Of a DNA stretch of 64,000 nt, positions 8,830-61,654 are shown piece after piece. The stretch's first letter is position 1. Each line of letters opens with the position of its first letter. The translations under genes and the position numbers were made by a program. Below the pieces are notes generated by a model. It was not told where the DNA came from and made no database searches. It worked only from the letters and a program-made list of their open reading frames with translations. The stretch is from Macrostomum hystrix (lineage: Eukaryota > Animalia > Platyhelminthes), in contig CATNEN010000038.1 in NCBI GenBank assembly GCA_950097015.1, forward strand, positions 23,622,001 to 23,686,000, written 5' to 3'.

Positions 8830-9402
8830 GACTATCTTGCTTTCGAGCCATATATGGTCAGGTACAGGTGCTTACTGAAGATTCGACATAGAATCTTTCA
8901 CTGTCTATTATAGTTTGCCTTTGAATGCTACAACGTGGTGTAGGCTGCTCTCGCACTCTCCTAAATGTTTCGGTTGGCCTAATTCATTCCATAGCTTTTC
9001 GTTTTGTAGCACACTTAGTTTTTTGTCCATTGTCTTTTTTACTTATATGGCGCCATTACATCGAGTTCTTTCTCAAAAGAAGTATCACTGTGTTATTATT
9101 AGTTTTGTATTAGTTTTGATCACTAATTCTATTAGGGGTTCATCAAAGGATTTTAGTGGCACTAATGGCGCATTGTAAACGGCGAGAGCTTGAGCCCCTA
9201 TTCAGAGAGTTTACCAACTGAACAGCTGTAAGCTTTGAGGAGGGCCTCGCGAATTCTCAGTCAATGGACTTTCAAAGTTTTAGTCGAAGAGACACAGAGG
9301 GTCAGACGAGCAGTATAAAGACGCAATAATAAAATTAGCTCAGTTAAACAGAACCGTAAAAGTTGCGCATTTGCATGGTTTACTTGGATTCTGAGTGCAA
9401 AA

Positions 9403-12340
9403 ATGGCCACTGCCACTAGTAGCAGGTTGCCTATGCAAGCCGAGCGCGGGAATTTCCAAGCTGTCAAGAAACTGCTTCGCTCCGGTGCCAACCCCGACGA
9501 GACAGATGCCAAGAACCAGAGCGCTCTGCATTATGCTTGTTGTCATGGTTACAATGATATTGCGACCATCCTGATTCAAGCTGGGGCCAACGTGGAGCTA
9601 GTAAACATCAATGGATTAACGCCTTTACAGCAAGCGATGATTGAATTGAAAGACAGCGACAAGGGATTAGAGATTGCCACCAGTCTAATTGAAGCGGGTG
9701 CCAATGACATCGAGCTCCCATCACCGGACAGCGCTGCCAACCGAAGAAAATATCATACTGGTCGACTGCAATTCGCTGCTAGCAATGGTCATCTGAGAAT
9801 TGCCGCCGCATTGATTGCAGCCGGAGCCGATGCTGACGACACAGATTCGCGCCAAATTTCAGCCATCCACTGGGCCGTCATGGAGGGTTATGCAAGCATT
9901 GTGGAACTGCTGATTGTCTCCGGAGCCGATTTGAGTGTAGTAATGCATGATATATATGCACTGCTGCATTGTGCCATCGATGTGAGGGATCAAGATATTG
10001 TCCGGCTGCTGATTCAGGCAGGTGCAGATGTGGAAATTCGAGGAGACTTCAACTTGACACCGCTGCATCTCGCAGTCTTCTACGGCATGGAAATCGGGGT
10101 TGATTTGCTCATCGAGGCTCAAGCCGATGTTGACGCGAAACTGAGCGCCGAAGTGTTCGAAGTCACGCCTTTAATTATGTCGGCCGCATTTAAACGAGCA
10201 AATATCGCCAAAAAGCTGCTGGACGCTGGAGCGGATGTGAACCTGTCCGGCAACAATAGATTCACCGCTTTGAGCCTTTGCATCCTGACCGCAGATGCTC
10301 AGTTGTGCAAGGTTCTGCTCGACACTAAAGCATGCGCAATGGACGATGACCCACTACTGGCTGTGACTGTAGCCTTAGCAAAGAAAAGAGGTTTTAAAGG
10401 TGTGTTGCAGCTACTAAAGGAGGCGGGATGCTCCTTACTAACAGATTACCATATTTCTAGCACAGGTCCACGAGATCGGCCTCATGAAGTGCGGTCAATC
10501 AACAATGACTTTGCCTTCAGCACTTTGCTGTCAAAATCTATGGAAAAGGCCGGCTTTAACTGCCGCAACGCCCTTTTGCTAAGTGGAGCGGTGGCACTAA
10601 TGGAAGACTGTACAAGGTATATTCAGCGCAGCCGTTTCATGTTTATCTTTGGCAGCTACGCTGACGGCTGGGGCAGCTGCCTGACTGCCCTTGATGGCAA
10701 CATCGATGACGACTCCGACATCGACTATACGTCTATTGACTCGAGGAGAAGTCTGTGCCTCCACGAGTTTTGTACGAAGCATGGTGACTGCGACGGAGTT
10801 ACCAAGGCAAACTATAACGATGGACATGCTTGCTGCCCGAATCGTAACGGTTAGTACTGAGTTTCTTTAACATTGCACTGTAACACGTTACGCATAGCAA
10901 ACATTTTGTACCAATTGCATGCTTGCCTTTTCAGCTTCTGGACCGAATGCACCGTTTCCAAACTTCTTAAGCAACGCTGCTGTCGACTTTATTGGCGCTG
11001 TCAAATGCTGCTGCTATCCACCGATAAGGATCACCGAGCAGGAATTCAAAGCCAGAACGCTAATTGCGCCTCACATCATTGACGCACTAGAAAATGTACT
11101 CAGACAATCAAACTACTGCCACGTGGTAACGGCAGCATGTCCTGGAGTGGAGAACAGCATGCGTCTGAGTACCACCTTTCTTGACAGAACCGTCATGCAC
11201 AATCTCACCACCGTCCAAGGACAGCTCTTTATTCTGCTCAAGTACATCGTCAAGAAAGTGTTGAGCAGTCGGGTGAAAGGGCTGAAGACGTACATTGCCA
11301 AGAACTTGCTGTTCTTCATGCTGGACAGAACGCAGAAGAATGATTGGAAGCCCTGCAACCTCATGAGTCTGACAGAACAGGCACTGAAGCTGCTCATTCA
11401 GATGATAACCAACTCAGCAGGTGAGAATGCTTGCATGAGTCACTTCTTCCTGCGTGACGCGATTGTGTACTTTAAGAGCGACCAAGACCCAAAAGAGACG
11501 ATCAAGAAGTGCATTGAGGAGGTCATCGAAGAGCTGCCGCAGCTTCTGCAGGAGTTCAAGAGCCAGCTGAAGTCCGGACCCGTGAACAAAATCATCTTCC
11601 ACCCTGGCCTGCAGATTTTTCTGTGGTCCAAGTTTCCCGTTTCCAGTTTCTACGAGATTCCGGAGGGCCAGGTCCAGTATCACCAAACCTACAACCTGGT
11701 GAAGCTCATCCTCAAGAAGCTCTGCGACCCGTTGCCTCGGAACGAGAGACTCAGTCGCGAGACGGAGCTGATGCAGCTGGTCCACAAGCTTCCAGACCAC
11801 GCGAAAACTGCCAGGGAGTGTCTGGAAGCAATGAGGCGTCTTAAAATGGGGGAGAGTTGGGAGGTGGCTGTGAGCTGCCTCAGCGAGAGCTCCAGTGTGA
11901 GCACTGGAATTCCACTCAGCATTCTTCCCGCTGGTGAGACTTCAGTGGACCGCGCGAAAGAGTTAGTTCGCGAATACGTGGAGAGCCACGACTCATTGTG
12001 GAGATTCGCCTTCTACTTGGGCTTCGATCAACAGCCCGACTTTGGATTCCTGCCAGAGAGCATCAGACTGGTCATGCAGCCGCTGATTCGGTACGGCATC
12101 TGGCTGCTCAACTTTGACGCTCTGGCCAAGGCGCTTCGTTCAAACGACCCGTTGCCTTTGATTCAAGACCTGCGCGAGCAGTTTGGAGACGAAGTCATCA
12201 GCGCCTTTCTGAGCTCACAGAAGCACCAAATTTTGAATATCATCGCGAGCAGCCTCAACCTCAGCAGCCGAACTGACGCCGACACCAGCGAAGTCGTGGA
12301 TCATCAGTTGCATCAGTTGTCTGAACCCGATCTTGATTGA
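9403..12340 (+). CDS. Ankyrin-repeat + Mab-21/cGAS-like nucleotidyltransferase (cGLR-type) fusion protein, 2 exons, ~950 aa
   Basis: Exons 9403-10849 and 10935-12340 with an 85-nt GT-AG phase-1 intron. About 9-10 ankyrin repeats (SALHYAC, TPLQQAM, SAIHWAV, TPLHLAV, TPLIMSA). NTase motifs FIFGSYADG...DSDID...VDFIGAVKC. Mab-21 motifs HVVTA, MRLSTTFLD, LLKY, LKTYIAKNLLFF, WKPCNL, MSHFF. Confidence 0.88.
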
Positions 12341-13888
12341 ATTCGTTAATCGTTTACCGAATTAACGTTATTGGTGAAACTGCTGAATCATTTCAATAAT
12401 CTCATTGCACACTGCTGTCCTTTTAGCAGTAGAAATATCACACTATCCCCCACCCTGGGGAAATACCACTGGGGTATTTCAAATGACCACAGCCTACTTC
12501 ACGATACCTCCGAAACCGAATGACCGATTTTATTAAAAGTCCTTCATACGGATCTATATTTTCCGCCCTTTGCGATGAACCGAGATATTCAGCGAATCTA
12601 CGAGTATATAGGTTAGACAGTAAAAAGTAGCAATTGAATAAATATACGTAATTATAGTAAAAATAGCTCGTAATAGCCCACATAGAAAATTCATGCCTAT
12701 ATTAGTAGTTTTTGCCACCAGACACCACCGACGAGCATCGTTGAATATCTCGACAATGCCGATATTTTGTTATTCCGGAAGATTTTTCATAGGATAGAGC
12801 GGAGAATTTTAGCCCGTGTTCTGGATATTCATGGCGATTGTTTGAATGTTTTAGGAGAGACAGAAAAAAGAAAACTCGGAGTATTCGAAATACCTCCGTG
12901 GACTGTGTACTATTAAACTGCTGAATCATTTCAATAACTTTGTTGCAAATTCTTAAATCCTACTTTCCTTATGAGTTATTGAGTACCTTGTATTTGCAGA
13001 GAGCGAGAGTAGGACCAATGTTTTTGACAAAAAGATAAAGTTTAGATCGATTAGAAAATGTGGCATACTGTAGTGATTTGCTCTATTTATCAGACAATTA
13101 AGTACAAGAAGTACATTACGAGTATTTTAATTAGTTGTTTTGCTAGTTAACTTCTACGAGTAATAAAACCTTTTTTCTCTTTAGTGTTTCGTGATAGTAC
13201 GTGTTGCGCTTTAACTTCTTCCGATCTGATCCAGTTTGAGCAACATATCCGTTACGGTCGGAATGGTACGCAGAGCTTACCATAGACTACGCTTTTGCCG
13301 AGGGCATAGACATGTTAACCTTTTTTAACCAATCAACGCCTGGCAAGTCAAAGTCGAAGGCTCAGACACTGTTCAAGATCGATTTTGTCGTGCACCATTG
13401 TGCCTGATAAAGATTTTCTTGAGATTTTAAGCGAGCATTTTATATTAATCTATAGTTTGCTGCCCTAATTATATTCACCAACTTTTTAAAATATCTAACT
13501 CTGCAAAAACTTTTCTATAATATGCTACTCAAAAGTAGAAGTGTCGTGAATTCGTTGCAATGTCTATAGCTACAGCAGCTGTGACCCGTTTTTCCTTCTC
13601 TACCAATAGGATGACTCGGCAGCTCAGTTAGAAACCCCCAGCAGCACTGCAGAAGAGCTACCATTGGTCCATCGGTTAGTCAGCCAATGACCAATATCAA
13701 ATGGTCAAAGAGAATTATCGTCCTAGGTGCTGGTGCTGGTAAATATATACTAATTGAATAGGAGTTTCTTATAGACTTACTATGTAAAAGGTTACTGAAA
13801 AAAGTCAGAATAATTTTTCCCTCTTGTTCCATGCATTGAATTCTCTTCATTGTACAACAATCCATCTGCTGCGTACCAATCGCAGAAA

Positions 13889-16800
13889 ATGGCTAATGAT
13901 ATATTGTTTATTGTGTTTGTTGTAATGACAATGTCGGCAACGATCGTCTCTTTGGATGCTCACCTAGACATGACAGTCGACGAGGATCTGGCACAAGGTA
14001 CCGAAATTCCCAATTCTCGCAGGCTCCTACAGGACAATGGCATAGATGCCAAGTCGTACGACCTGCTGCCTCATCCTTACATGGAATACGGCAAAGAGGA
14101 CGGTTTATTGAAGGCAAAGAAGCTACTGGACCGAGATGCAATGTGCACTAACAACAAAATGTGTTGCGACAACGCTCAGCTAGTCTGCCCGTTGGTCCTG
14201 ACATTCATCAGCCATAGAACTTCGACACTGCAGAGGAAGGTGCTTCGAATCGGGCTTCGCGACCGCAATGACCACATTCCGCGCTTCGAATTGGCAGCGA
14301 AGTCGTTTTTCATACCGGAGGACACACCAACGGGCCACCTGGAACGATTGCCGTTGGCCAAAGACTTCGACTCTGATGAGAACTCTGTACAACGCTACAG
14401 TCTGACACCGAGCAACTCACCGTTCGGTCTCAAACAGGACCTGCACAGTCGGCTAAGCCGCGAGAATGTCCAGCTTTGGTTGGAGCTGAAGTCACAATTG
14501 GATCGCGAAGCGCAAGCCTCGTACGAGTTCGTGCTGACCGCCATCGATGCCGGAGACCAGAAGGGCAGCATGCGCATCATTGTCAACGTTACAGACCGCA
14601 ACGATGTGTACCCGCATTTTGTGCAGAGCAGCTCAGCTGGGCAGACCAAGCGTCTATCCGAGAGCCTGAGACAGAATACTCGAGTAGCTAGAGTCGTTGC
14701 TAAGGATGAAGACGAAGGTGTAAATGCAGAGATTTTGTACGAGCTTGACCCGCACCAACCGGATTTGGGATCCGTTCAGCGGCACTTCAGAGTCGACTCT
14801 CACACTGGCGACATAACACTTTTGCGCCAGCTTGATTACGAAGACACGACTGAGTATAAAATCGCGGTGATTGCTAAAAACCGAGTGCCTTACAGTACGC
14901 ACAGCAGACTGTCCACCGCCACCGTGACAATCATTGTGCTGGATGAGAATGACGAAACCCCGGTGCTTAAAATACATTACTGGCAGGGTGAGGGTCAGAC
15001 TATGGCTAGCATTGTAGAGAATCAGATGGAGTCCATGGTTGTGGCCATCATTACTCCCACGGACAGGGATAAAGAAGTTAATGGACAAGTTGTATGCGAT
15101 TTACTGGACAACAGAGACAAAGACTACTTTCATTTAAGTAAAATACCTGCCGGAACAGAGTACTACTTGAGCACAAAAACTGGCAACGGATTTGATCGAG
15201 AGCAATTTCTCAAGGATTCTCTTGTTGATCCGTCAGCAACGGAAGTGAAGATTGATGTGTCTGTCGTGTGCGCGGATCGCGGAAAACCACCTAGAACTGC
15301 CAACGCTAGCGTCAGTGTTCGCATTCTCGACCTCAACGACAACAGCCCGGTGCTGAAGGTGCGCACATACGTGGGCAGGAGCTCGTCTTTTGGCGAGACG
15401 ATGATCGAGATTGACGAGAATCTGCCAGTTAGAACCACCATTGCCAGAATCGACGCATTTGATCCTGACTATCGAGAAAACGGCACAGTCATCTTCTCCA
15501 TGGACCAGACATTGTCTTATTCGCTAGATGCGTTTGGAATCTACGCTGATGGTCGCTTGGTGACGAAGCGGGTGCTAGATCGAGAGGCGTTGAACTTACC
15601 CAGCGACCTATTTCAAGTCGTCGTTGTCGCGCAGGACAGAGGTCAGCCGGCCAGATCAAGCACCATCAGTCTAGAGATTCGCCTCAAGGATGTCAACGAC
15701 AACGCGCCCCAGATGGAGCCACAGATGACCTTTACTGTGTTTGAAAACAATGCGACCGAATACCAGGTTGGTACTATCAATGTTACCGATCCAGATCGGG
15801 TCGGTCAGCTGTCTGTGTCGTTGCAACCGTTGAGACCGCATGATCGGATACCATTTAGAGTGCAAAAAGAGCACGGGCGCTTCTACCTGCTTGCCACTGA
15901 CAGACTGGATAGCGAGCAAATCAACGAGTACAAGTTTCTGTTAATAGCCATCGACGCCCTTCCGAGTTTAGGCGGACACACTGTCACCAGCACAGTAACT
16001 GTCCATGTTCAAGACGTCAACGATCACACTCCGCAGATTGTGTATCCGTGCAATGGCAAGCCGTTCAGGCACAACCACAGCGTTTCCTGGCGAGAGGGCT
16101 ACGGTCATACCGTTGTTAAAGTCAACGCCAAGGACGAAGATCAGGACAAGTCTACAAACGGTCGTTTGAACTTTAGAATGCTGCCAAATAGGCTGTTCCT
16201 GATTGAAGAAAAATCTGGCGAGGTGAAAGTCGCCGCACAGATGCGTCACAGCGACATGGGTCCGAAACTAGTCACAGTGGTCGCTAGAGACGACGGAAAG
16301 CCAATCAGTCTGAGCTCGACTTGCGAATTTTTTATCATAGTGGACAACTCGGTGCCATACAGTCTGGGAGTAGCGAATGGCAACAGCAAAGCGGCTTCTC
16401 AGCCCCCAATTAACAGCGGAGGTCGCAATGGTGACATGGTTTCTCGGAGCCTAATGAGCGACTCCAGCATCTTGGCCGCTGTGGCTGTATTTATCTGCCT
16501 GCTGCTTTTATCGACCCTGCTGTTGTTTCTGTACGCCAGGCACTGGCATGGAACGCCGGACTTTCTGCCCGACCTGCTGGAGCCCTGCCTCGGTTCTGTT
16601 GAGCCCAGCGTGGCTGCCAAGCAATGTACGGGGGCCGGCATGCAGGACTCTGGACAAGCCTTGCAGCTATCCGGCCAGCAACGACTCGTGATTGGTGGTG
16701 GCGCCTTTGGCAAGTCAAGTGAGCCCACTGAGGTAAGTTGGAGAAGTGCTCACTAACTATTGCGGTTCTGGGATAACTAATAATAATAATTGCAGGAGGG

Positions 16801-19800
16801 CTGCGAGCAGTAGCACATCATTTATTGACACTCGACCCGTGTGTACATCTGCCCTGACTTTCTCATCGTCAGGCAGTGTACACTCTCACTGTGCCTACCC
16901 TCGATGGCGAAAACTGCACGACATGTGCGATATGTCAAGCCTTGTCTCCGCGGCTGCGCCTTGAATGAATATGGCCTCGCCGCTGAATCGAGCTCAGGGA
17001 CCTTGGTGCGAGAGGCTAACGCTCTGCCACTCACCCTGTGGAACTGAAAGCGCAGTGAGGTTGGGATTTCGAATCTCTTCCCAAGGTGCGATGAAAAACA
17101 TTGTTCTTGAGCTCCAGTAGAAACAGCTCTCAGATTCGGACAATGGAGATTTGACTTTTTCGATTTATTTGCTACCGTTTTTTGGCAGAAAAAAGTTGAG
17201 CAGCTGTCGAATAATCAAGTATGTCAAATATGGCATAAAGTTGGCAGAATTTGAGGCGCATGCTTTAAATTTGCCAGAGTTTTGTTCCTGTTTAGGGAAT
17301 TTGAAAACTGAAATCTGATTTAAGAGGGTGGAGCCAACTTTATAGATTTATTAGAAATTGCCCAGCCCTCAGTGGGGTGGACCAGCTGTCGTGCTGACTG
17401 TGCTGAATGTGCTGACTGTGTGTGTGTGTCAGGCGGAGGCATTTCTGACCAGGTTGAAACAAAGCAATCTAATCGACATGGATTGTTTGGCCGGGATCTC
17501 GCAACTGGCCAATAGTTGAATTGCAGTATTTTCTTCGTTGAAAGGAAAGTGGAAACGCTGCGAATCAGTTGGCCAAATCTTGGAATGAAAGTTTCGCGGA
17601 CGGGTAAGAATTAACTCGAGTGGGATCGTCTTCCCAGCGCCCTCATTCCAATCTGTTCCCAAATCCCATAAGTCTAGAGCCCCCCGGTAATGAATTTTAT
17701 GACACTTTAAATCAGATACTTTCATTAACGTTGCAGCTAATGTCGCAGCAAATACAGACGCTTTGCCTAGACTAAGAGGCTAATATAGTGAAGTGTTACA
17801 GCTGACTATTCACCTCTCATTTTGGAGACAAAAATATTTAGTTGGAAATGCAATTCTGGTCATACCTAAAGCAAGATCATAAATGCCATTTTAGTCATAC
17901 AGGCTGGCTAGGATGCACTTTTTAAGCCTACTATTGCAGTTTCGATATAGTATAGTAAGTGTCACTATAGTACTTGTCTTTGAGTCATTGCTATAATTGG
18001 CTAGAGTAAGACGCATAACAGTGCTTTAGCTCACCCAACTTTAGTTGATCAACCCACTGACGACGAGTATTATGTACATTTCAGTCTCATGCTCTGATGC
18101 AACAGCAACAGCAGCAGCAGCAGCAGCAGCAGCAATTATCATCTTCGTCTTTGTATCAATCGATGCCATTGTCTCGAAGGCAAATTTATATTGGCCGTGG
18201 CGAAGCAGGTGCTGCATCAGGTGAGAGTTCAGATCGATCAATACTGTGCTTATCCTAGATTGTTTTGAATGTTATTTACAGTAACTGATATTGATTCAAC
18301 CACTGCCATTCTCTCCATTTCATCTGTCACTCCTCTCTCCACTCCATCTGGCACTCCTCACTCACTCCTTCTGTCACTCCTCTCTCACTCCATCTGTCAC
18401 TCCTCTCTCACTCCATCTGTCACTCCTCTCTCACTCCATCTATCAATCCATCTGTCACTCCTCTCTCACTCCATCTGTCACTCCTCTCTCACTCCATCTG
18501 TCACTCCTCTCTCACTCCATCTAGCACTCCTCTCTCACTCCATCTAGCACTCCTCTCTCCACTCCATCTGGCACTCCTCACTCACTCCGTCTGTCACTCC
18601 TCTCTCACTCCGTCTGTCACTCCTCTCTGACTCCATCTGTCACTCCTCTCTCACTCCATCTGTCACTCCTCTCTCCCTCCATCTATCAATCCATCTGTCA
18701 CTCCTCTCTCACTCCATCTGTCACTCCTCTCTCACTCCATCTGTCACTCCTCTCTCACTCCATCTGTCACTCCTCTCTCACTCCATCTGTCACTCCTCTC
18801 TCACTCCATCTGTCACTCCATCTGTCACTCCTCTCTCACTCCATCTGTCACTCCATCTGTCACTCCTCTCTCACTCCGTCTGTCACTCCTCTCTCACTCC
18901 ATCTGTCACTCCTCTCTCACTCCATCTGTCACTCCTCTCTCACTCCATCTGTCACTCCTCTCTCACTCCATCTGGCACTCCTCTCTCACTCCATCTGGCA
19001 CTCCTCTCTCACTCTATCTGTCACTCCATCTGTCACTCCTCTCTCTCTCTGTCATTTCAAATGCCTCCAATACTCTCAAAGGCAATCCTTGAATTTATAT
19101 GAACAAATTTATGGTTCTTGAAGCCGACGAACTATTAAAAAATCATTTCAATGTAACAAACTCATAACCACTCTCGTAAAAAAATCGGAGATTTGCAATT
19201 TTAAAGAACGTCCAATTAATTTTTTTTCCCAAGTGAATGAATTGGTCACAAACTGCTGAAGTGAAATTGCAAAAAAAATTGTTAGACTCGATCATTACAC
19301 CCGGTGACTTGCTTGCCCCAAAAAAAGTTCATTTGTTACACATTTGCGCCATATATTTCAACTATGTTTCCGACTTTAGTCTTTCATGCCATTAGATCGA
19401 AATTTCTAAATTTCGCTTCAGCCTAATGGGATCCAGATATTTTTACCAACTTTTTTTTAACTATCGGAAACACAAAATTCTTTCCTAATAGGAAAAAGTC
19501 ACTGGCGAGAAAACAGAACAAAATATACAATTAAAATTTCATGAATTTTGCCTAGTAGCAGTTTAATAGCGTTTTTATTGATGTAAGCTTAATCAACAGT
19601 TTCAGTTAAAGCAAACAATTCTTGTTAGTGAGTTAGTGTCGCTTTAAAGATTCCATTAACTGTTCTGTGCGTTAGTTGGGTCTGCTATGACCCTATTGAT
19701 TCAATCCAATAGAATTTTCGAATCCCTCTAATTCTAAAATACCTACCCTTTCCAAAGAAATGCTTATTCCTGTCCACTATACCTCTAATACTAGGTATAA

Positions 19801-22800
19801 ACTTCCCATTCATCAATCTTCTATTTCCCTTTAAAAATTGTCCCCAAATTTTAATTCTCGTAGTTCTTCCCCTTTTTTCTCCACCTCTCTCGTTCTCCCG
19901 ATCTCTTCTAATCTACCAATCTTCCAATCCTCCAATCTTCCAATCTACCAATATTCCAATCTTCCAATCTTCCAATCTACCAATCTTCCAATCTTCCAAT
20001 CTTCCAATATACCAATCTTCCAATCTTCCAATCTTCCAATCTTCCATTCTACCAATCTTCCAATATACCAATCTACCAATCTTCCAATCTTCCAATATAC
20101 CAATCAACCAATCTTTAAATCTACCAATCTTCCAATCTTCCAATCTACCAATCTACCAATCTATCAATCTTGCAATCTACCAATATTTAAATCTACTAAT
20201 CTACCAATCTACCAATGTTCCAATCTACCAATCTACCAATCTACCAATCTATCAATCTTGCAATCTACCAATATTTAAATCTACTAATCTACCAATCTAC
20301 CAATGTTCCAATCTACCAATCTACCAATCTACCAATCTATCAATCTTGCAATCTACCAATCTTCCAATCTAGCAATCTAGCAATCTACCAATCTACCAAT
20401 GTTCCAATCTTCCAATCTACCAATCTACCAAACGTGAGTCCCTGACTACGCCCAATGCGAAGAGTGTTCACTTCATTGAGTGGCAATAAAAAAAGTAACA
20501 AGGTGGGGTACAATTTCTACTTCAGTAGGTAGCGCCAGTTGTGTGTGACAACATCCGCTACTTGTTCTGTCAGTTTTTTTGTCCCACTTAAAGACTTTAA
20601 GTATATTATTATATTATTTAATATTATACAATCGATAGAATTCTTGCTTATAATCATGAGCACGAGCAAGTTGAAAGGGGAGTTTGATTGTAACTGTAAC
20701 AATCTGACAGAAGGACGTTAAGGTTTGACATATCCGCTATAGTTTGACAGCTAGACACGTGGAAGTCCAGCGGTTTGCGAAAAAAAATTGCCCAACTCTT
20801 TTGTGCGTCTGTGTGAAGTTTGCACTCAAAGGAATTGGGAGGAGAGAGAAGATGGAAAAAACTGGATGGGAACATGTTCTTTGCGTGACAAATGTCGCGC
20901 GCCGCCTTTAGGCCGAAAAAACCGCACCGATATAGAAAAAGGTTAGATTGCGTCTAAATGATATTACTTGGCTTTGTAGCTTAGAATCGCAGCAGGAACT
21001 GTAGCTTAGAATCGCAGCAGGAACTATAGCTTAGAATCGCAGCAGGAACTGTAGCTTAGAATCGCAGCAAGAACTGTAGCTTAGAATCGCAGCAGGAATC
21101 GTAGCTAGAATCTCAACCTAAAATCGCAGCAGGAACTGTAGCTTAGAATCGCAGCAGGAACTGTAGCTTAGAATCGCAGCAGGAACTGTAGCTTAGAATC
21201 GCAGCAGGAACTGTAGCTTAGAATCGCAGCAGGAACTGTAGCTTAGAATCGCAGCAGGAACTGTAGCTTAGAATCGCAGCAGGAACTGTAGCTTAGAATC
21301 GCAGCAGGAACTGTAGCTTAGAATCGCAGCAGGAACTGTAGCTTAGAATCGCAGCAGGAACTGTAGCTTAGAATCGCAGCAGGAACTGTAGCTTAGAATC
21401 GCAGCAGGAACTGTAGCTTAGAATCGCAGCAGGAACTGTAGCTTAGAATCGCAGCAGGAACTGTAGCTTAGAATCGCAGCAGGAACTGTAGCTTAGAATC
21501 GCAGCAGGAACTGTAGCTTAGAATCGCAGCAGGAACTGTAGCTTAGAATCGCAGCAGGAACTGTAGCTTAGAATCGCAGCAGGAACTGTAGCTTAGAATC
21601 GCAGCAGGAACTGTAGCTTAGAATCGCAGCAGGAACTGTAGCTTAGAATCGCAGCAGGAACTGTAGCTTAGAATCGCAGCAGGAACTGTAGCTTAGAATC
21701 GCAGCAGGAACTGTAGCTTAGAATCGCAGCAGGAACTGTAGCTTAGAATCGCAGCAGGAACTGTAGCTTAGAATCGCAGCAGGAACTGTAGCATAGAATC
21801 GTAGCAGGAATCGCAGCAGGAACTGTAGCATAGAATCGTAGCAGGAATCGCAGCAGGAATCGCAGCAGGAATCGCAGCTAGAATCGAAACGCACAAAATG
21901 AAACTATGTAAACAAATCAGAGCACGAAGTTAAGAATGCAAAATATTTTTTTATTCCCTGCGGAAGCAGGGCGGGGGTATTGTTAGGAGCTTAGGTGCCT
22001 TTTCACGCAGAGCAGTCAAGCAGAACAAAACAGGAAATAATAAATGCAGACATCAGGGCCACCCAGTGAAGTCCCTCCATAGGGATTGAAGAGTCTTATA
22101 GTTGGCTAGTCAACTGAGGACACCACTGTCATAGCAGCATAGCAAGAGCCTTTGAAAGATTTGGATTGCAAATTTTCGGTTCATCGAACCCGGAAGAAAC
22201 TAAAATAATTGGGGAGAGAGAGAAAACTAATTGTGCACAGAAAATGCATTCAGACAGCTGCTTAGGTTAGGGCGGCTGTGGGATCCTATGGACTAGCCAT
22301 AGGGGATTAGAAGGGATTGGCAAAGACCACCTCTGACTGGTCCCGAGATAGAATGAGAGTTTGAATTCAATCTTGAAAATGAAAGCGAATGGGATTGGAA
22401 TTCGTATTGTAAAGATTTGTTCGAGTTAATGCTTAAATCTGGCCCAGCATTTAGTATGTTCAGCGTGCAGTATATTATCGAGTTCATATCGATTACTGTC
22501 GCTGCGATTGGGAGAAGGATGAGAGAGATGGGGAGAGGGAGGAGAGAGATGGGGTGAGGGAGGAGAGAGATGGGGAGAGGGAGGAGAGAGATGGGGAGAG
22601 GGAGGAGAGAGATGGGGAGAGGGAGGAGACAGATAGAGAGAGGGAGGAGAGAGATGGGGAGAGGGAGGAGAGAGATGGGGAGAGGGAGGAGACAGATAGG
22701 GAGAGGGAGGAGAGAGATGGGGAGAGGGAGGAGAGAGATGGGGAGAGGGAGGAGAGAGATGGGGAGAGGGAGGAGACAGATAGAGAGAGGGAGGAGAGAG

Positions 22801-23661
22801 ATGGGGAGAGGGAGGAGAGAGATAGGGAGAGGGAGGAGACAGATAGAGAGAGGGAGGAGAGAGATGGGGAGAGGGAGGAGAGAGATAGGGAGAGGGAGGA
22901 GACAGATAGAGAGAGGGAGGAGAGAGATGGGGAGAGGGAGGAGAGAGATGGGGAGAGGGAGGAGAGAGATGGGGAGAGGGAGGAGACAGATAGAGAGAGG
23001 GAGGAGAGAGATGGGGAGAGGGAGGAGAGAGATAGGGAGAGGGAGGAGAGAGATGGGGAGAGGGAGGAGAGAGATTGGGAGAGAGAGGTTGGGATTATAG
23101 AGAGATGGATGAAAGAGAGAGTTGAGAGAGGGAGTGATTGGTGGGTCAGGTACGAGATGGGATAAGAGGGGATTAAGTTATAATATATGTGGGATTCTGA
23201 AATGAAACAATCCGGATAAGTAAAATATCATCAAACAAAAAACACTGCAACCATTTTTTCACCAGACTACTACCAGTTCAAAAGTGCCATCGAATCGATG
23301 CAGCAGCAGCAGCAACGGCCGGCGCCTGCCAGAGCATTCGAGCTTCGACAGCTCGGAGGTCCAGACATTTATCGCGTCCTTCAGCAGCAGCAGCAGCAGC
23401 AGCAGCATCAACAGTCTGAGCTGCTAGCAGCTACTATGTCAACGGCTGGTCGAATAAGTGGTCGCCAGGCTTACCAGACTTTGCTGTATCAGCGGCAGCA
23501 GTCTCAGAGACTTACCCAGCTGCCAAGCAGTTTCCAAATTGACGACGACGTCGACTTTCCAGAACCGGGGCGTCGGTCGTTTCATCGCTCTGAGTCCGAT
23601 TTGCCAGGGCAGCTGGGATGCTCCACCGACTACAACAGGACCTGGCAGAGAAGCGACCTGA

Positions 23662-23693
<32 letters not shown>

Positions 23694-23819
23694 CCTAAGC
23701 ATCAAAGATCTTCGTCCGCTTTTCATCGTCCAAGTAGAAGCTTGAGAACTATTGACGGCGGTGGCTGGGCTAACCCAAACAACAAGCCGTATCCGAATAT
23801 TCAGGCTAGCTATGTTTAA
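13889..23819 (+). CDS. Protocadherin (7 cadherin repeats, TM helix, polyQ cytoplasmic tail ending SYV), 3 coding exons, ~1177 aa
   Basis: Exons 13889-16732, 18085-18220, 23266-23819 with matching phases (0,1). Signal peptide, six DxNDxxP linkers plus a seventh EC, LDRE/LDYE motifs, TM segment ILAAVAVFICLLLLSTLLLFLY. Confidence 0.9.
16778..17036 (-). mobile_element. tRNA-derived SINE family A, copy 3
   Basis: Reverse complement of the 4389 head and body, with a short (TAA)n tail at 16778-16790; lies in protocadherin intron 1. Confidence 0.85.
18318..19052. repeat. ~23-bp pyrimidine-rich minisatellite (CTCCATCTGTCACTCCTCTCTCA)
   Basis: Directly visible at the 5' end of protocadherin intron 2. 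Confidence 0.95.
19905..20431. repeat. 8-bp-based repeat (ATCTTCCA/ATCTACCA)
   Basis: Directly visible. Confidence 0.95.
20975..21886. repeat. 25-bp minisatellite (CTGTAGCTTAGAATCGCAGCAGGAA)
   Basis: Near-perfect tandem units. Confidence 0.97.
22518..23088. repeat. 21-bp purine-rich minisatellite (GAGAGGGAGGAGAGAGATGGG)
   Basis: Directly visible near the 3' end of protocadherin intron 2. Confidence 0.95.
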
Positions 23820-23877
23820 TTTTTTTCTAAATAAAGTTAAAATCCCGGTCCTGGCTATGATTTTCACACACCTCAAT

Positions 23878-24795
23878 GCTCGCGAGAATTTTCACATCCG
23901 ACAACACCCCAAGATTATCACACTTCAGTCCTCGCGAGAAGTTTCACACCCGACAACACCCAAGATTATCACACTTCAGTCCTCGCGAGAAGTTTCACAC
24001 CCGGCAACACCCCAAGATTATCACACTTCAGTCCTCGCGAGAAGTTTCACACCCGACAACACCCAAGATTATCACACTTCAGTCCTCGCGAGAAGTTTCA
24101 CACCCGGCAACACCCCAAGATTATCACACTTCAGTCCTCGCGAGAAGTTTCACACTCGACAACACCCCAAGATTATCAAACTTCAGTCCTCGCGAGAAGT
24201 TTCACACCCGACAACACCCAAGATTATCACACTTCAGTCCTCGCGAGAAGTTTCACACCCGACAACACCCCAAGAGTATCACACTTCAGTCCTCGCGAGA
24301 AGTTTCACACCCGGCAACACCCCAAGATTATCACACTTCAGTCCTGGCGAGAAGTTTCACACCCGGCAACACCCCAAGATTATCACACTTCAGTCCTCGC
24401 GAGAAGTTTCACACCCGGCAACACCCCAAGATTATCACACTTCAGTCCTCGCGAGAAGTTTCACACCCGGCAACACCCCAAGATTATCACACTTCAGTCC
24501 TCGCGAGAAGTTTCACACTCGACAACACCCCAAGATTATCAAACTTCAGTCCTCGCGAGAAGTTTCACACTCGACAACGCCCCAAGATTATCACACTTCA
24601 GTCCTCGCGAGAAGTTTCACACTCGACAACGCCCCAAGATTATCACACTTCAGTCCTCGCGAGAAGTTTCACACCCGGCAACACCCCAAGATTATCACAC
24701 TTCAGTCCTCGCGAGAAGTTTCACACTCGACAACACCCCAAGAGTATCACACTTCAGTCCTCGCGAGAAATTTCACACCCGACAACGCCCCAATA
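23878..24795. repeat. 51/52-bp minisatellite (TCCTCGCGAGAAGTTTCACACCCGGCAACACCCCAAGATTATCACACTTCAG)
   Basis: ~17 units starting ~60 bp after the protocadherin stop. Confidence 0.96.
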
Positions 24796-38581: not shown

Positions 38582-40335
38582 CGAGGGGTGTTTCAAAAGT
38601 AACGAGAATTTAGTCATAACTTTTTAATGGATAAACTTTTTAACTTGAAATTTTTACCCGATAATTTTGCAAATATGGACAGCACACAGCTTCAGTTGCA
38701 ACCCTGTCGGTCTACATGCACCAGTGAAATCGCACATTGAAGTCCAGACCTCGAGATTAAAAATTACGATTTTTGTCTGTGGAAAATAGTGAACAGGTGA
38801 ACGTGTTTGTTGTGTCAAAAATCAGCGCCTTCGTCCATTTCTTCAGCGATTTCAGCACGCTCCACAAAGCTGCCATCGAGCTGGATACATTTCTCATAGC
38901 GATGCAGCAGTTTGTCGATTCCCTCCCCCCAAAAACTCGCAGGCAGCGCATGGAGAGATTCGTTGGCCGCCGCAATGACTTCCTGTCGACTGGTGAAGAC
39001 GCGACCTCGCATGGGCTTCTTCATTACTCCAAACAAGTGAAAGTCAGCAATGGCGAGGTCTGGTGAATAAGGTGGATGATTAAGCAGCCGAAAGCCGAGC
39101 TCTTCCACTTTCCTTGTGGTGGCCGCGGCGACGTGAGGGCGAGCGTTGTCCCACAAGATGAAGGGCCTGGCGCGCATGATGCGTCGCTTCTGGAGGATGA
39201 CTTCACGCAGACGAGCAACTTGATCTTGCACGTATGCAGCATTGATGGTGGCCTTGTCTGGCAGGTAGTCGACCATCAGAACCCCACAGGCCTCAAACCA
39301 CATGGTGCACATGATGTTGCGTGTCCATGCCGACTTCATTGGCTTTGTGTGCGGCTGACGGCCCCTGGGCCCCCACTGCATGGACAGCTGCTTAGTCAGT
39401 GGATTAAACATTGGCAGTGGTGTCTCATCAATACTGATGAGAAGTCGTTTAAACTCCTGATCACCAAGTTGCTGCCACAACTGCAAGTTCTCCGTTGCAC
39501 ATTGAATTCGCTTTCTTTTGTGGTCCAGGGTCAACTCACGCGGCACCCACTTGGCACAGACTCTCGACCAGTTTATTTCCTTGAGGATGCGGCTCACAGA
39601 AGCAATGGAGATGCTACAGACCTCCTCAACTTCACGCAATGTGGCAGAAGGATTGGCGCAGAGGTAATCACGGACAATCTGTTTGCTGTTGTCATCCGTT
39701 GACGTGCGGGGGCGACCTGACCTCGGCGCGTCACCACATCCTGTAGCACCCTCGCGGAACGCCTTGCAGTGAGCATAAACCCGCGCTTGCGATAGTGCCT
39801 GATCTCCAAATGCCTGGTTCAGGTCCCGAGCGATATCGCATGGCTTCTTTCCAAGTTGAACCAGACCAGCGATAAAATGCCGTTGTCCTTCCTTTGATCC
39901 AATTTCTGAATGATCTTTCGGTCGTTCCATAGTCTCACTTGAAAGCACTTTTCAGTCAAGTCTCTCAGTCAAGCATTTGCAATTTTGAGCAGCCTATGCA
40001 GCTTAAAAAACATAAATTCCTAGGCAACTTTGCCCATAAACAGCAGACACCGGAGACAGTATCAGAAGCAGCTGAGTGCATCAGCAGCATCATTAGCAGT
40101 TTTCAAGTTCTAAGCAAGTTCTCAGGTAAATAGACCACAGACAAAAATCGTAATTTTTAATCTCGAGGTCTGGACTTTAATGTGAGATTTCACTAGTGCA
40201 TGTAGAGCGATAGAGTTGCAACTGAAGCTGTGTGCTGTCCATATTTGCAAAATTATCGGGTAAAAATTTCAAGTTAAAAAGTTTATCCATTAAAAAGTTA
40301 TGACTAAATTCTCGTTACTTTTGAAACACCCCTCG
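38582..40335 (-). mobile_element. Full-length mariner (DD34D) DNA transposon, 1754 bp, ~201-bp TIRs, TA target-site duplication
   Basis: TA at 38580-81 and 40336-37; TIRs at 38582-38782 and 40135-40335; intact transposase ORF inside. Confidence 0.96.
38815..39930 (-). CDS. Mariner transposase, ~371 aa from the first ATG
   Basis: HTH region with RSGRP, WVPREL, catalytic IDET / WDNARPH / YSPDLAIAD, with 34 residues between D2 and D3. Confidence 0.96.
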   Translation of the reverse strand: MERPKDHSEIGSKEGQRHFIAGLVQLGKKPCDIARDLNQAFGDQALSQARVYAHCKAFREGATGCGDAPRSGRPRTSTDDNSKQIVRDYLCANPSATLREVEEVCSISIASVSRILKEINWSRVCAKWVPRELTLDHKRKRIQCATENLQLWQQLGDQEFKRLLISIDETPLPMFNPLTKQLSMQWGPRGRQPHTKPMKSAWTRNIMCTMWFEACGVLMVDYLPDKATINAAYVQDQVARLREVILQKRRIMRARPFILWDNARPHVAAATTRKVEELGFRLLNHPPYSPDLAIADFHLFGVMKKPMRGRVFTSRQEVIAAANESLHALPASFWGEGIDKLLHRYEKCIQLDGSFVERAEIAEEMDEGADF

Positions 40336-49587: not shown

Positions 49588-52500
49588 TCAGACAATCAGA
49601 CACCTAGAGCGCCTGCGATGCCTGAGCTTCCTAACCGGTTTGAGAATGCAGAGTCCGCGCCTGGTGCACACGAGAATCTTGTCTTCGCCAAGCGGCGCCA
49701 CTCCGGTGATCTCGTCCAGCTCCTGTAGGAACTGCAGCCTCTGGACAAAGATGAACTCGCTTCTGCGAATCACCCAGAACAGTCGCTGGCGTTGGTTGTC
49801 GGTGAAGATGATTCGCTTGTCACTGGTTGTGATGATGTGCGCCGGCACCGAGTCAAAGATCTGTGTCGTTGTCAGCTTCCTGTAGACTCCGGTGCGATCG
49901 TTCACAATAAGGATGTGACCTTCGGTTGGGCAGGACACCCATAACATTTTTCTCTCCCTTGTCCAGGTCACATACTGTGGATGCAGATTCTCAAACGTGA
50001 ACCAATGACCTGTACGGCCCAGGCAGGGCGTGAAGAATTCCACCTTCTGATCTGACGGCTGAGCTACGACTAAGTCGCCGCGGCGGCTGTCAACGAAGAA
50101 GCCGGCAAACAGGGGCTCCTCGCTGGTGCCACCGATGCGCTCGATTCGCTTCACAACCTGACCGTCCAGCTGGAGGCATGCCACCACCGACAGCCAGGAG
50201 TTCCCGGCGCCGCTGGCAGCTGATGACGTCGACTCCAAAGTTGGTTGGAGTTGGGCCACGCCGCTGACGTACACCAGACCGTTCACGAGGCGCATGTGGT
50301 GGCACTGAAGCCTACCCACTGAGCTGCCAACGTCGCTTGGAACAACGACAGGCAGATCTTTGAGCCGGCCCTCCTGACCGGAGTAGATCAGCAAGGATCT
50401 TGTGCAGCCATTCAGCAGCACCAGGTCGGCTAGCTCCGTTGATCCGTCGGCGTCGGTCAGCAGGCCGGCCGCCGCGATCTCCAGTTCACCGCTAGTCGAC
50501 TGCAGCAGTTCAGCGCAGGCACCGGTGTCAACCTCCTTCAGCTTGTAGCTGCTGTTGCGTTTCATGTTGTGCCGAATGAAGCTCAGATCTAGCGCGTCCT
50601 CAGCTTCTGACGAGTCGCTGCCGCCGCCTCCGCCGCCGCCGCCGCCGCGAACGTCGTCGTCGAGATCAATATCGTTGACTTCGTTGATTTCGACAGGCAA
50701 TCTGGAAGCCGACGATGTTGAGTAGTGCTGCGGACCAGCGGCAGCTGCCGCCATGGCGTCCTGCAACTTCTGGGAGCGGCTTTCAGCGTCGTCAAGCCGG
50801 GTGATGAGTTTGTTGAGGTTCTCTCGCACAGCCAACAACTCGGCCTTGTCGAATTCGCTCATCAGAGCTGACGATGCAGTACGACTGCCGCCGAGGCCGC
50901 CAGCCGCGCCAGAGTCGTTGGCGGCTGCGGCTGCAGCTGCGGCCTCCGAGCGTCGGACAAAATCCTCGGCTAGGTGCGTTAGGATCTCCTGCTTTCGTTC
51001 CAGGCTGCGCTTTCTGCCGCCGACTCCGCCGAAGCCGCTATTGCGTCCGCGTGGGCTTCCGACGTTCGACGCGCCGCCAGCAATGGAAGCACCCGCGGCG
51101 ACGTCGCTAGCACAGCCTGGCAGCTGCATCCGACGGCACTGCCTGTCGACAATGTAGTTGATGATTGACTGATGCGCCGTTGCCGTCGGCAGGCAGCGCA
51201 ATCCGCCAGTCGGTAGGCGAGCTTCCATTCGGCACAATGGGCATGGAAATCGGTCTCGATTTGGCTGCTGACTGTCCCATTTCTCTAGGCAGGTGAGGCA
51301 GAACACGTGCGAACAGTGCAACAGTTTCGGCTCGTGCAGTCGGCCCAGGTGAATGGGACAGGTAGTCAGCTCTTCCAGCGGCTCAATGCTGCCACTGCTA
51401 GACAATGAGCTGCTGCGGCTGGCCTGAAAAAATGGGGCACTTTAATAAGTTCATAAATGGATTCTCTTATCTTTGTTTATCGCATCCCATGAGGTTAACA
51501 AAGATTGGCCACTTGCTTTTCTAACCCAGTCTTTTCTAGTCTATTGGATCGTTAATAAAGTCTTGGCACGAGTGTCTGAGGATCTTAATTGAAGTCTGGA
51601 CTATAAAATAAGTATCCCTAACGTCTAACTATCATAATTAACAAGATATGTGCCTATGAAATACCCAATTAATCACAGCAGAGATTTGTGTTGCTGCTTT
51701 AATTAAGAAAGTGCAGACTAAAAAAAGCTCAGCTAGTAATTAATCTAATGATTGGCGGTCTAGATCAGTTAGTCTCTTCTAGCTAATATCAGGTTCTAGG
51801 CTTGAGATTGTGCCTAGGAACTGAGATAAGACATTGTTAAAAATCTCATAGCAAAATCAACTAACCATGTGCCTTTTAAATATGATCTTCATGTCCGATC
51901 AGGAACTTAATTAGAGTTCTGATTGGGAATTCATTATTGGAATGCCCAATTTATTTGAATTCGGGATAAAAGTTTGCCTTTTAATTGGGATTCTGATACA
52001 GTCAATGAATCTAGATTGGGATTTGGATTTGGGTAATGGGATAATTAGAAATCTGGATTGGGATTTGGGTAATGGGATAATTAGAAATCTGGATTGGGAT
52101 TTGGGTAATGGGATAATTAGCAATCAGGATTGGGATTTGGGTAATGGGATAATTAGAAATCTAGATTGGGATTTGGGTAATAGGATAATTAGAAATCTGG
52201 ATTGGGATTTGGGTAATGGGATAATTAGAAATCTGGATTGGGATTTGGGTAATAGGATAATTAGAAATCTGGATTGGGATTTAGGTAATGGGATAATTAG
52301 AAATCTAGATTGGGATTTGGGTAATGGGATAATTAGAAATCTAGATTGGGATTTGGGTAATAGGATAATTAGAAATCTGGATTGGGATTTGGGTAATGGG
52401 ATAATTAGCAATCAGGATTGGGATTTGGGTAATGGGATAATTAGAAATCTAGATTGGGATTTGGGTAATGGGATAATTAGAAATCTGGATTGGGATTTGG

Positions 52501-55500
52501 GTAATGGGATAATTAGCAATCAGGATTGGGATTTGGGTAATGGGATAATTAGAAATCAGGATTGGGATTTGGGTAATGACTAATTAGAAATCAGGATTGG
52601 GATTTGGGTAATAGGATAATTAGAAATCTGGATTGGGATTTGGGTAATGGGATAATTAGCAATCAGGATTGGGATTTGGGTAATGGGATAATTAGAAATC
52701 TAGATTGGGATTTGGGTAATGGGATAATTAGAAATCTGGATTGGGATTTGGGTAATGGGATAATTAGAAATCTGGATTGGGATTTGGGTAATAGGATAAT
52801 TAGAAATCTGGATTGGGATTTAGGTAATGGGATAATTAGAAATCTAGATTGGGATTTGGGTAATGGGATAATTAGAAATCTAGATTGGGATTTGGGTAAT
52901 AGGATAATTAGAAATCTGGATTGGGATTTGGGTAATGGGATAATTAGCAATCAGGATTGGGATTTGGGTAATGGGATAATTAGAAATCTAGATTGGGATT
53001 TGGGTAATGGGATAATTAGAAATCTGGATTGGGATTTGGGTAATGGGATAATTAGCAATCAGGATTGGGATTTGGGTAATAGGATAATTAGAAATCTAGA
53101 TTGGGATTTGGGTAATAGGATAATTAGAAATCTGGATTGGGATTTGGGTAATGGGATAATTAGAAATCTAGATTGGGATTTGGGTAATAGGATAATTAGA
53201 AATCTAGATTGGGATTTGGGTAATGGGATAATTAGCAATCAGGATTGGGATTTGGGTAATGGGATAATTAGAAATCTAGATTGGGATTTGGGTAATGGGA
53301 TAATTAGATATCTGGATTGGGATTTGGGTAATGGGATAATTAGCAATCAGGATTGGGATTTGGGTAATAGGATAATTAGAAATCTAGATTGGGATTTGGG
53401 TAATAGGATAATTAGAAATCTGGATTGGGATTTGGGTAATGGGATAATTAGAAATCTGGATTGGGATTTGGGTAATAGGATAATTAGAAATCTGGATTGG
53501 GATTTGGGTAATGGGATAATTAGCAATCAGGATTGGGATTTGGGTAATGGGATAATTAGAAATCTAGATTGGGATTTAGGTAATGGGATAATTAGCAATC
53601 TGGATTGGGATTTGGGTAATGGGATAATTAGAAATCTAGATTGGGATTTGGGTAATGGGATAATTAGCAATCAGGATTGGTATTTAGGTAATGGGATAAT
53701 TGGAAATCCAGATTGGGATTTGGGTAATGGGATAATTAGAAATCAGGATTGGGATTTGGGTAATGACTAATTAGAAATCAGGATTGGGATTTGGGTAATT
53801 GGATAATTAGGGATCCATATCAGGATTCTGGTAATGGGATAATTGGAAATCCAGATTGGGATTTGGGTAATGACTAATTAGAAATCTGGATTGGGATTTG
53901 GGTAATGGGATAATTAGCAATCAGGATTGGTATTTAGATAATGGGATAATTGGAAATCCAGATTGGGATTTGGGTAATGGGATAATTAGAAATGAGGATT
54001 GGGATTTGGGTAATGACTAATTAGAAATCAGGATTGGGATTTGGGTAATGGGATAATTAGCAATCAGGATTGGTATTTAGGTAATGGGATAATTGGAAAT
54101 CCAGATTGGGATTTGGGTAATGGGATAATTAGAAATCAGGATTGGGATTTGGGTAATGACTAATTAGAAATCTGGATTGGGATTTGGGTAATGGGATAAT
54201 TAGCAATCAGGATTGGTATTTAGGTAATGGGATAATTGGAAATCCAGATTGGGATTTGGGTAATGGGATAATTAGAAATCAGGATTGGGATTTGGGTAAT
54301 GACTAATTAGAAATCAGGATTGGGATTTGGGTAATTGGATAATTAGGGATCCATATCAGGATTCTGGTAATGGGATAATTGGAAATCCAGATTGGGATTT
54401 GGGTAATGACTAATTAGAAATCTGGATTGGGATTTGGGTAATGGGATAATTAGAAATCCAGATTTGGATTTGGGTAATGGGATAATTAGAAATCCAGATT
54501 TGGATTTGGGTAATGGGATAATTAGGGATCCATATCAGGATTCTAGTAATGGGATAATTTAGAATCCTGATCTGGATTTGGAAAATGGGATATAATATAG
54601 AATCCACATTCGGTTTGGGTAATTGAATAATTAAATATGGGGATTTTCTTCGTGATGTTTTTGAAACATTTTATCTCTTCATTACTAGTACCGGTTGATT
54701 TTGAGATGAAAAATCATTCAGTCGATTGCGCATGAGAGATCTGTGAATCTTGAGAACCTAAGATGTTTCTCAGGTGTCTTGTTATATAATTTCACACCAA
54801 TAGATTGCTAATTAGTAGTTGACTCGAATGGTTCTGACGCATTTCGTAAATGGTCTAATTAAGTTGCAATACAAAGCCAGTTGAGCAAGGACACAGAGTT
54901 TATTTCGAGTGGTATTCTTTCTTCAAAGAGCGCCTTGTACTTTTAGAATAGGCTGCTTCCTACAGCTCACACAATCGAACAATGACGCATTAACTAATTG
55001 TGTGTTTTGTTACAAACGAGAATATTTTTCCACAGAAGCTCTCCGCAACTTCTCAAAATGAGAGCTTTGGAGCGTGATTTCATGCAAACTTTTGGTTATA
55101 CTCGGCACGCACGAGAAATGAAGGTTTTTTTAGCGAAAATAACTAAAATCTACAATGGGTAGATATTGAATCGTTAGACTAATTGATTGGGTTGAATCTT
55201 TACCCAATTAACTATTTAATTAAGAGAGACCTACAAAGTTAAAATGTGGTATAGCGAATCTGATTGTAAATGGATAGAGGATGGGGTAGATGATGGAGTA
55301 GAGGTTTGGGTAGATGATGGAGTAGAGGATGGGGTAGATGATGGAGTAGAGGTTTGGGTAGATGATGGAGTAGAGGATGGGATAGATGATGGAGTAGAGG
55401 ATGGGATAGATAATGGAGTAGAGGATGGGATAGATGATGGAGTAGAGGATGGGATAGATGATGGAGTAGAGGATGGGATAGATAATGGAGTAGAGGATGG

Positions 55501-57910: not shown

Positions 57911-58394
57911 TATCTCGCTCCCTCTCGACCGTGACCGGCCCAATTTCTGCTTTCCAAATCCAATGTCCAATGAGTTTGGACTGTGTCTTCTGTGTGTGTT
58001 TTTGTGTGTGCCTGTAAGGTCACACTGGCATACCAGGCATACCGAAATTTCCAAACCACCTCAATAAATTATACACATTTGGTTGCTACGTGTCAGATTG
58101 TTTACATGTATGTATTTTTTGTTTTTGGCCAAAGTCATTCAACGCAACATAATCTTGATATACGAGCTACTACATTATAAAATGTAAATTGATACATCGA
58201 TATATTAATGGTTCATTTAAGCACTATAGTAGTTCATGAACAAGATACTTTGATATATAAAATAAAAATCATTCTTTACGCTTTATCATTTCCGCGTCGA
58301 TATACTATTATGAAGCTCTGTTGATTTAATATTTGTGATTGGCGAAAATCAAGGTTGGCAACTCTTGAAACTTTCGGACGCTGGCGAAAGTCCG

Positions 58395-61210: not shown

Positions 61211-61654
61211 TTCTTTCTTTGGTGAACTTCGGTGGACAAAATTCAAGTAGACCAAAGTCCGATGGACAATGACAAATCCATTGACTAAAATGTTCTCTTA
61301 AGGATAATTTTTTCTGTGAATGTCTAAGATTTGGAATTTCTACTGCTGTATGCTAGTTGGCGACAGAATTGTAGCAACCTGAATGGCAGCATAAAAGGAG
61401 TAAAAAATGAAAGAAAACTCACCCACTCAAATGTAGCTTTTATTTCTGATGCTCAAAGCCTGTCAATCTGCCTTAGCTTTTGATCGCTAATTAAGATGCA
61501 TCGGAGAAAAAATATCAAACAAAAAACGCATTACCTCGTGACCTAAATTTCACACACAAAATATACTGCATTAATAGCTTTCAGATCTTTTTCACCATCT
61601 GTTAATTAATTAACCCGACACGCAAGAGGGTAATGGTTGCTGCTTTCTTTGTAA

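Follow-up and report, generated by a model that had tools for sequence, protein, structure and literature searches.

A transcribed ankyrin-repeat cGAS-like receptor gene of Macrostomum hystrix and the expanded family to which it belongs

Among the pattern-recognition receptors of animals, the cGAS-like receptors (cGLRs) form a large family, and to our knowledge hardly any of their ligands are known. Here we describe a gene of the flatworm Macrostomum hystrix that joins an ankyrin array to the core of such a receptor. The stretch that we analysed, called the window throughout, comprises 64,000 nucleotides of contig CATNEN010000038.1 (assembly GCA_950097015.1, positions 23,622,001 to 23,686,000 of the forward strand), and the coding region lies on its forward strand at 9403–12340. 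An earlier note, made from the letters of the stretch, had joined two open reading frames (ORFs) here through an 85-nt phase-1 intron into one protein of ~950 residues. Both frames are present in the ORF listing (9403–10854, 483 aa, and 10919–12340, 473 aa, both on the + strand), and reading by hand places the intron at 10850–10934 (85 nt, GT..AG, phase 1), where gttagt opens it at 10850 and ttttcag closes it at 10934. Base 10849 is the final base of exon 1 and the first base of the split codon g|ct, which encodes Ala; the frame of the second ORF resumes at 10937, and the predicted product has 482 + 1 + 467 = 950 residues. The ATG at 9403 is the first start downstream of an in-frame stop and lines up with the Met of a paralogue.

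The junction was then found in public sequencing runs. The search returned four runs that contain the gene, all belonging to a single study with no record of library type, and two further runs with weak matches. When contigs from the runs were aligned to 8900–12900, transcript-type contigs of at least 99 % identity tiled ~9357–12836, and in the region compared none lay before 9302. Runs X3, X4 and X5, which come from one study, each yielded a contig that omits exactly 85 nt between GT and AG and joins 10849 to 10935, so the splice junction predicted from the letters is crossed in three runs. Exon 2 has a single 100 % copy in the assembly, and the intron-less contigs therefore do not stem from a retrocopy in the assembled genome. 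The spliced form exists; the contig data are silent on strand, level and exact ends. The parts of the gene are as follows.

9357–9402, + strand: 5′ untranslated leader, minimum extent (contigs start at 9357–9377, none before 9302).
9403–10440, + strand: ankyrin array of ~10 repeats counted by eye, exon-1 residues 1–346, acidic with an isoelectric point (pI) of 5.0 (Pfam Ank and Ank_2).
10441–10849, + strand: linker helices and first part of the nucleotidyltransferase (NTase) core, with the spine helix, GS at 10651–10656 and DID at 10717–10725 (collinear with the N-lobe of the family).
10850–10934, + strand: intron of 85 nt, GT..AG, phase 1 (skipped in the X3, X4 and X5 contigs; site and phase kept in a paralogue).
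10935–11572, + strand: rest of the cGAS-like domain, with the third Asp at 10985–10987, RLSTT at 11162–11176 and the Mab-21_C lobe at ~11228–11512 (Pfam, hhalign).
11573–12340, + strand: family-specific C-terminal tail of 255 aa, acidic, with the stop codon at 12338–12340 (AlphaFold2 model, conservation in the family).
12341–12836, + strand: 3′ untranslated region of uncertain extent, with repeated sequence (contigs run on to 12597–12836; 96 % identical to the flank of a paralogue).

The 3′ flank is repetitive over 12377–12940, with an identical 20-mer near 12381 and 12919. Contigs there show a back-joint that leads from 12597 to 12377, and at two points, past 12399 and past 12836, they continue into sequence without another match in the window; no downstream exon could be placed. 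The repeat may be a fragment of a mobile element or a strain difference.

Searched against Pfam, exon 1 matched Ank at E 9e-39 (129.8 bits, cut-off 21.1, seven scored stretches) and Ank_2 at E 3e-38 (130.6 bits, cut-off 27.3); these are the tandem 33-residue repeats above the curated cut-off (PF00023/PF12796) that define an ankyrin-repeat protein, and the ~10 repeats counted over residues 1–346 agree with the 9–10 read earlier. For the second half of the protein, Mab-21_C matched residues 104–198 of the second ORF at 20.3 bits against a cut-off of 24.1, PF03281 was undetected by Pfam in the window and in close relatives, and phmmer of the second ORF and of the C-terminal part of exon 1 against PDB sequences gave nothing relevant. 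Because the Mab-21_C match of the window is sub-threshold, the assignment had to go through relatives. Close relatives carry Ank and Mab-21_C above the cut-off (24.6–32.6 bits for Mab-21_C), and distant ones carry the canonical Mab-21 NTase domain (PF03281) and Mab-21_C (PF20266). Of the profiles that the earlier note had proposed to run, Ank was clear, Mab-21_C stayed below the cut-off in the window and passed it in relatives, and PF03281 was undetected in the window. The helical-lobe motifs of Mab-21 type that the earlier note had recognised are represented by the 20.3-bit match and backed by the family and by a profile–profile comparison, in which hhalign aligned the family profile to a canonical Mab-21 protein with 97.2 % probability, from the strand of the third Asp through the helical lobe.

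The active-site motifs stand exactly where they had been placed from the letters: GSYADG starts at 10651, DSDID occupies 10711–10725, and the Asp codon of VDF is at 10985–10987. The spacer between GS and DxD, described as long, is exactly 20 residues, and RLSTT is present. Counted by hand, the window motif is FGS-X20-DIDY-X56-VDF, in which X56 is made of 40 exon-1 residues, the junction codon and 15 exon-2 residues. It fits the cGLR motif h[QT]GS X8-20 [DE]h[DE]h X50-90 h[DE]h (Li et al. 2023, PMC9980059), F in place of [QT] before GS being the sole departure. In an alignment of 85 rows the exon pieces of the window follow uninterrupted relatives collinearly, and the exon junction comes to lie in a variable loop. 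The five catalytic columns, which read G, S, D, D and D in the window, are kept in 47–53 of the 58 family rows and in 19–21 of the 21 canonical Mab-21 rows. It also retains the near-invariant R and S of R-L-S, two Lys, a Tyr, a Lys and a Trp. Homology, one of the marks of a cGLR according to Li et al. 2023, extends across the NTase core and the helix bundle, the NTase core being reached only via alignment to distant matches that carry PF03281. By this alignment the G-S, D-x-D and D residues are shown to be present at homologous positions.

We examined the fold with a relative of the window protein. Against the PDB, the first 15 matches of the family profile were only cGLR1 and cGAS chains, all weak (E 1.6e-3 to 0.07). 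The relative modelled, P0005, has 636 aa and is 37–40 % identical to the window pieces, the exons being handled as separate rows. Its AlphaFold model has a mean predicted local distance difference test score (pLDDT) of 91.8 and a predicted template modelling score (pTM) of 0.91, and Foldseek placed cGAS and Cv-cGLR1 at the top with E 3e-8. With VIA-align, residues 5–311 of the model superposed on residues 162–521 of human cGAS with Z 18.7 and a root-mean-square deviation (rmsd) of 3.9 Å over 266 residues, and the model gave Z 17.5 with Cv-cGLR1, 17.4 with MB21D2 and 17.1 with MAB21L1; no OAS entry was among its top 50 structural matches. The model has the usual layout of a pol-beta NTase, with GS after the first strand, DxD in the strand that comes next and the third Asp in a later one. 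The structural homology to cGAS and the CD-NTases that Li et al. 2023 use to define cGLRs is therefore seen in the relative P0005, and its model shows a cGAS-like fold for the family. The superposition on cGAS and cGLR1 that had been put forward as a check, run here with the relative, came out in favour (Z 18.7 and 17.5), and together with the homologous columns, the hhalign result and the PDB profile search it bears out the earlier claim of an intact G-S, D-x-D and third D in a cGAS-like NTase.

Compared with human cGAS (7ftu), oyster Cv-cGLR1 (8gjw) and human MB21D2 (7lt1), the whole catalytic domain of the P0005 model superposes at Z 17.4–18.7 with an rmsd of 3.8–3.9 Å over 263–270 residues, and G-S, D-x-D and D are all present. 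The identity is 12–17 %, however, and the flatworm proteins differ in the GS–DxD spacer of ~20 residues with its conserved G-W-G, in an NTase that is about neutral rather than basic, and in their extra N- and C-terminal domains.

The tail after the Mab-21 lobe is 255 aa long and mostly helical; the earlier note had put a helical tail at ~220 aa. Folded alone with the family alignment, the last 255 residues gave an AlphaFold2 model with a pLDDT of 80.9 and a pTM of 0.80, in which helices predominate beside a few short strands, and alignments show the tail to be conserved across the family. Foldseek of the tail against the PDB found no match at E ≤ 1e-3. The best Z of a wide VIA search was 7.4, and its TPR/PCI-like rows, which reached Z 5–6.5, were treated as not significant, these values being below the meaningful level for helical proteins. 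In the ESM Atlas all scores of the tail were sub-threshold (≤ 0.86), the death-domain clusters at 0.81–0.83 being a possible lead. As modelled, the tail is without recognisable fold.

How far does the family extend? An index-free search of 1.8 billion representatives yielded 128 relatives, of which 48 had E ≤ 1e-30. A length of 900–1400 aa, with the match in the C-terminal half, is common among them, and none in the databases exceeds 50 % identity. A search for exon-2 homologues with a length window gave six matches. Every named close relative is from Macrostomum lignano, a scallop "MB21D2" being among the more distant matches, in keeping with the earlier suggestion of a divergent, lineage-specific clade. 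The family has the signature G-S-[YF]-x-[ED]-G-W-G ... S-D-[IV]-D, and so does the window. Paralogues, whose number the earlier note wished to see counted, are plentiful: in the 220-Mb assembly an N-lobe exon query found 135 matches at E ≤ 1e-3, almost all of them open, so that there are at least 135 N-lobe copies, and an exon-2 query gave 90 scored matches out of 163 candidates. Copies of the family lie in tandem clusters on many contigs (for example C1:12.7-12.8 Mb, C3:10.2-11.9 Mb and C18:16-186 kb). In most copies the N-lobe is an exon of its own of ~130–230 codons, whereas in the window gene N-lobe and ankyrin array share one 1.45-kb exon; all of 11 other paralogue loci examined have the GS...SDxD exon in one frame and the exon with the third Asp and R-x-S-T-T in another.

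The nearest paralogue, L013 (G000:C38:23203300-23209300, − strand), is 92 % identical and lies on the same contig ~430 kb away. Its intron is 71 nt long and only 53.5 % identical, but the GT and AG ends, phase 1 and a GCx junction codon are preserved; the paralogue lacks ~80 residues of the ankyrin array and has a 3′ flank 96 % identical to that of the window gene. Synonymous divergence (dS) between the two falls from 5′ to 3′: it is ~2.5 for the ankyrin part, 0.74 and 0.32 for the NTase parts of exons 1 and 2, and 0.024 for the tail. The ratio of nonsynonymous to synonymous divergence (dN/dS) is 0.15–0.37 in all four parts. Such a gradient suggests, under purifying selection, either a recent gene conversion of the 3′ half or its chimeric duplication.

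The architecture has a published precedent. An ankyrin-repeat (ANK)-cGLR is listed as a recognised architecture, with ANK-cGLRs in a coral, Stylophora pistillata (Li et al. 2023, bioRxiv 10.1101/2023.02.22.529553, PMC9980059; Fig. 1C/S2A), and Table S3 of that study includes five M. lignano proteins of the present family, cloned as NTase-domain constructs for a screen of 140 proteins. The novelty implied by the earlier note accordingly fell away: Li et al. 2023 already include both ANK-cGLR fusions and members from Macrostomum, and the genome has at least 135 copies. Our literature search found no paper discussing a macrostomid cGLR expansion. The M. lignano proteins with Ank and Mab-21 domains, PAA66982.1 (948 aa) and, from Table S3, PAA45980.1, PAA57558.1, PAA86972.1, PAA93208.1 and PAA68676.1, resemble the window protein in their order of ankyrin array, NTase and tail and in the same signature of GS, SDxD, and R-x-S-T-T with the following helix, at 34–45 % identity over exon 2. 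They differ in belonging to another species and in the number of repeats, which is ~10 in the window and varies among the relatives between zero, in fragmentary models, and very long arrays; the window moreover has a Glu-to-Asp change at a near-invariant position, considered below. The fusions of other animals are alike by description, with ankyrin repeats and a cGLR core with a complete active-site motif. Unlike them, the flatworm proteins end in a conserved domain of ~250 aa without recognisable fold, and they come from a phylum in which cGLRs are described as mostly missing, most platyhelminths being reported to have only Mab21-like proteins (Li et al. 2023, PMC9980059).

What might such a protein do? 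Its core has the parts required of a cGLR; it would be a catalytically competent enzyme whose ankyrin array may take part in sensing or gating. In the scheme that we favour, the enzyme would be inactive at rest until the ankyrin array, the C-terminal domain or both recognise a ligand, whose binding would free or order the active site. The product would be a second messenger, a cyclic or linear oligonucleotide, to be read by a divergent STING-type protein of the same genome. The ligand would more likely be a protein or another non-nucleic-acid molecule than double-stranded DNA or RNA, because the NTase pieces of both exons sum to a net charge of about zero and the whole protein is acidic, whereas nucleic-acid-sensing cGLRs have a pI above 8.5 and non-nucleic-acid ligands have been suggested for acidic ones (Li et al. 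2023, PMC9980059).

A candidate for the last step was found in the assembly. A STING_LBD-like match of 25.0–25.6 bits (cut-off 27), covering profile positions 3–145 of 182, lies at G000:C2:9104529-9104996 on the − strand (locus L024:1000-2010), in an open frame of 337 codons whose L-R-L-I-L-P stretch resembles the way in which known STING ligand-binding domains begin. The match was seen with the full open frame and missed when the frame was taken from its TTG start. Against the PDB all 30 matches of the frame, all weak, were STING. The frame probably represents a single exon of a divergent gene of STING type.

That the window holds a two-exon transcribed gene for one protein of ~950 residues, and that this protein belongs to the cGLR family, we regard as very nearly certain, and ligand-gated synthesis of a messenger by the Ank-cGLR as about evenly balanced; for gene model, family identity and ligand-gated synthesis taken as a whole, our rough probability is 0.7. 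Several points weigh against this account. The RNA support all comes from the single study of unrecorded library type. Mab-21_C is sub-threshold in the window and PF03281 is undetected in it, and the evidence for the fold is the model of P0005, at 37–40 % identity, rather than of the window protein. The motif has F before GS, its spacer is at the upper limit of X8-20, and at 11183–11185 the Glu found in 80 of the 82 aligned family and canonical rows is Asp in the window. This near-invariant Glu is the E of an L-E-R motif after R-x-S-T-T; the 92 % paralogue keeps it, and the transcript contigs have no variant at the position. Further, the 15 active enzymes that were chosen for in-depth analysis came from insects, anemones, molluscs, hydras and corals, with no flatworm among them (Li et al. 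2023, PMC9980059), and the role given to the ankyrin array is purely one that we infer.

The alternative that survives best grants an active enzyme of the cGAS/OAS fold that is not a cyclic-dinucleotide synthase for STING, and would make instead a linear 2′-5′ oligomer, a cyclic trinucleotide or a nucleotide-modified molecule, or act through an effector other than STING. The remoteness of the clade from characterised cGLRs, with 12–17 % structural identity and weak profile matches to the PDB (E 1.6e-3 to 0.07), speaks for it, as do the long spacer, the Glu-to-Asp change and the finding of a single STING_LBD match, below the cut-off, in a genome with at least 135 of the enzymes. However, the best structural matches of the relative are cGAS, cGLR1 and MB21D2, and no OAS is among the top 50. 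We consider this alternative unlikely, yet the one to be taken most seriously.

Lower still we place a non-enzymatic scaffold in the manner of Mab21L1, which would act only by ankyrin-mediated protein binding. Such a protein would agree with the departure of the motif from its canonical form before GS, with ankyrin and tail domains as typical protein-binding modules, and with the lack of a flatworm among the 15 active enzymes that the screening study went on to describe. Against it, many cGLRs are said to show no activity in vitro because their ligand is missing (Li et al. 2023, PMC9980059). Moreover, dN/dS is below 0.4 across the NTase, and G, S, D, D and D are kept in ~80–90 % of well over 100 diverged copies, a retention that is hard to explain without selection on catalysis. 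The improbability is plain in the last case, two separate genes or a decaying pseudogene with an artefactual join, for which one could cite the unrecorded library type and the common origin of the three runs, and which hardly deserves belief against an identical GT..AG skip in three runs with contigs of at least 99 % identity, a single 100 % copy of exon 2 that leaves no retrocopy source, and two exons that are open, collinear with uninterrupted relatives and under purifying selection.

Returning to the Ank-cGLR as a ligand-gated enzyme, we note that the gene is one of at least 135 copies that have arisen by radiation, as would suit a repertoire of receptors that has diversified. A bolder version, which we offer tentatively and think doubtful, is that these Ank-cGLRs form an intracellular repertoire in which the variable ankyrin array, not a basic groove, would read protein or small-molecule ligands, the C-terminal helical domain, not described before, would couple binding to the active site, and the output would pass to the STING-fold proteins of the genome.

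The remainder of the window holds other genes and repeats. Directly downstream of the cGLR gene, 13850–16756 (+ strand) is an open frame of 968 codons that matches Pfam Cadherin at E 2.5e-66 and has at least six such domains; it is probably a large exon from a gene of protocadherin/FAT type. On the − strand, an ORF of 605 codons at 49591–51405 has an N-terminal RING finger (zf-C3HC4 family matches) and may encode a TRIM-like E3 ligase, and one of 377 codons at 38818–39948 has mariner/Tc1-type transposase domains (Transposase_1, DDE_3, HTH_32). Extreme strand skew marks the blocks 18001–20000, 22001–24000, 52001–56000 and 58001–62000 (GC skew −0.50, +0.35 and up to +0.78; AT skew +0.36–0.38). 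Long ORFs within them have only low-complexity or pentapeptide-like Pfam matches, and the blocks are probably satellite or simple-repeat arrays.

The locus itself brings no new principle, and its architecture, like the Macrostomum clade, has been catalogued in print before. What the transcribed and constrained Ank-cGLR and its at least 135 copies indicate is that one flatworm lineage has greatly expanded the cGLR system. With an ankyrin array and a C-terminal domain set on a near-neutral core, the family is a reasonable place to seek non-nucleic-acid ligands of cGLRs, and as a system for finding new cGLR ligands it is of somewhat higher value than the single locus.

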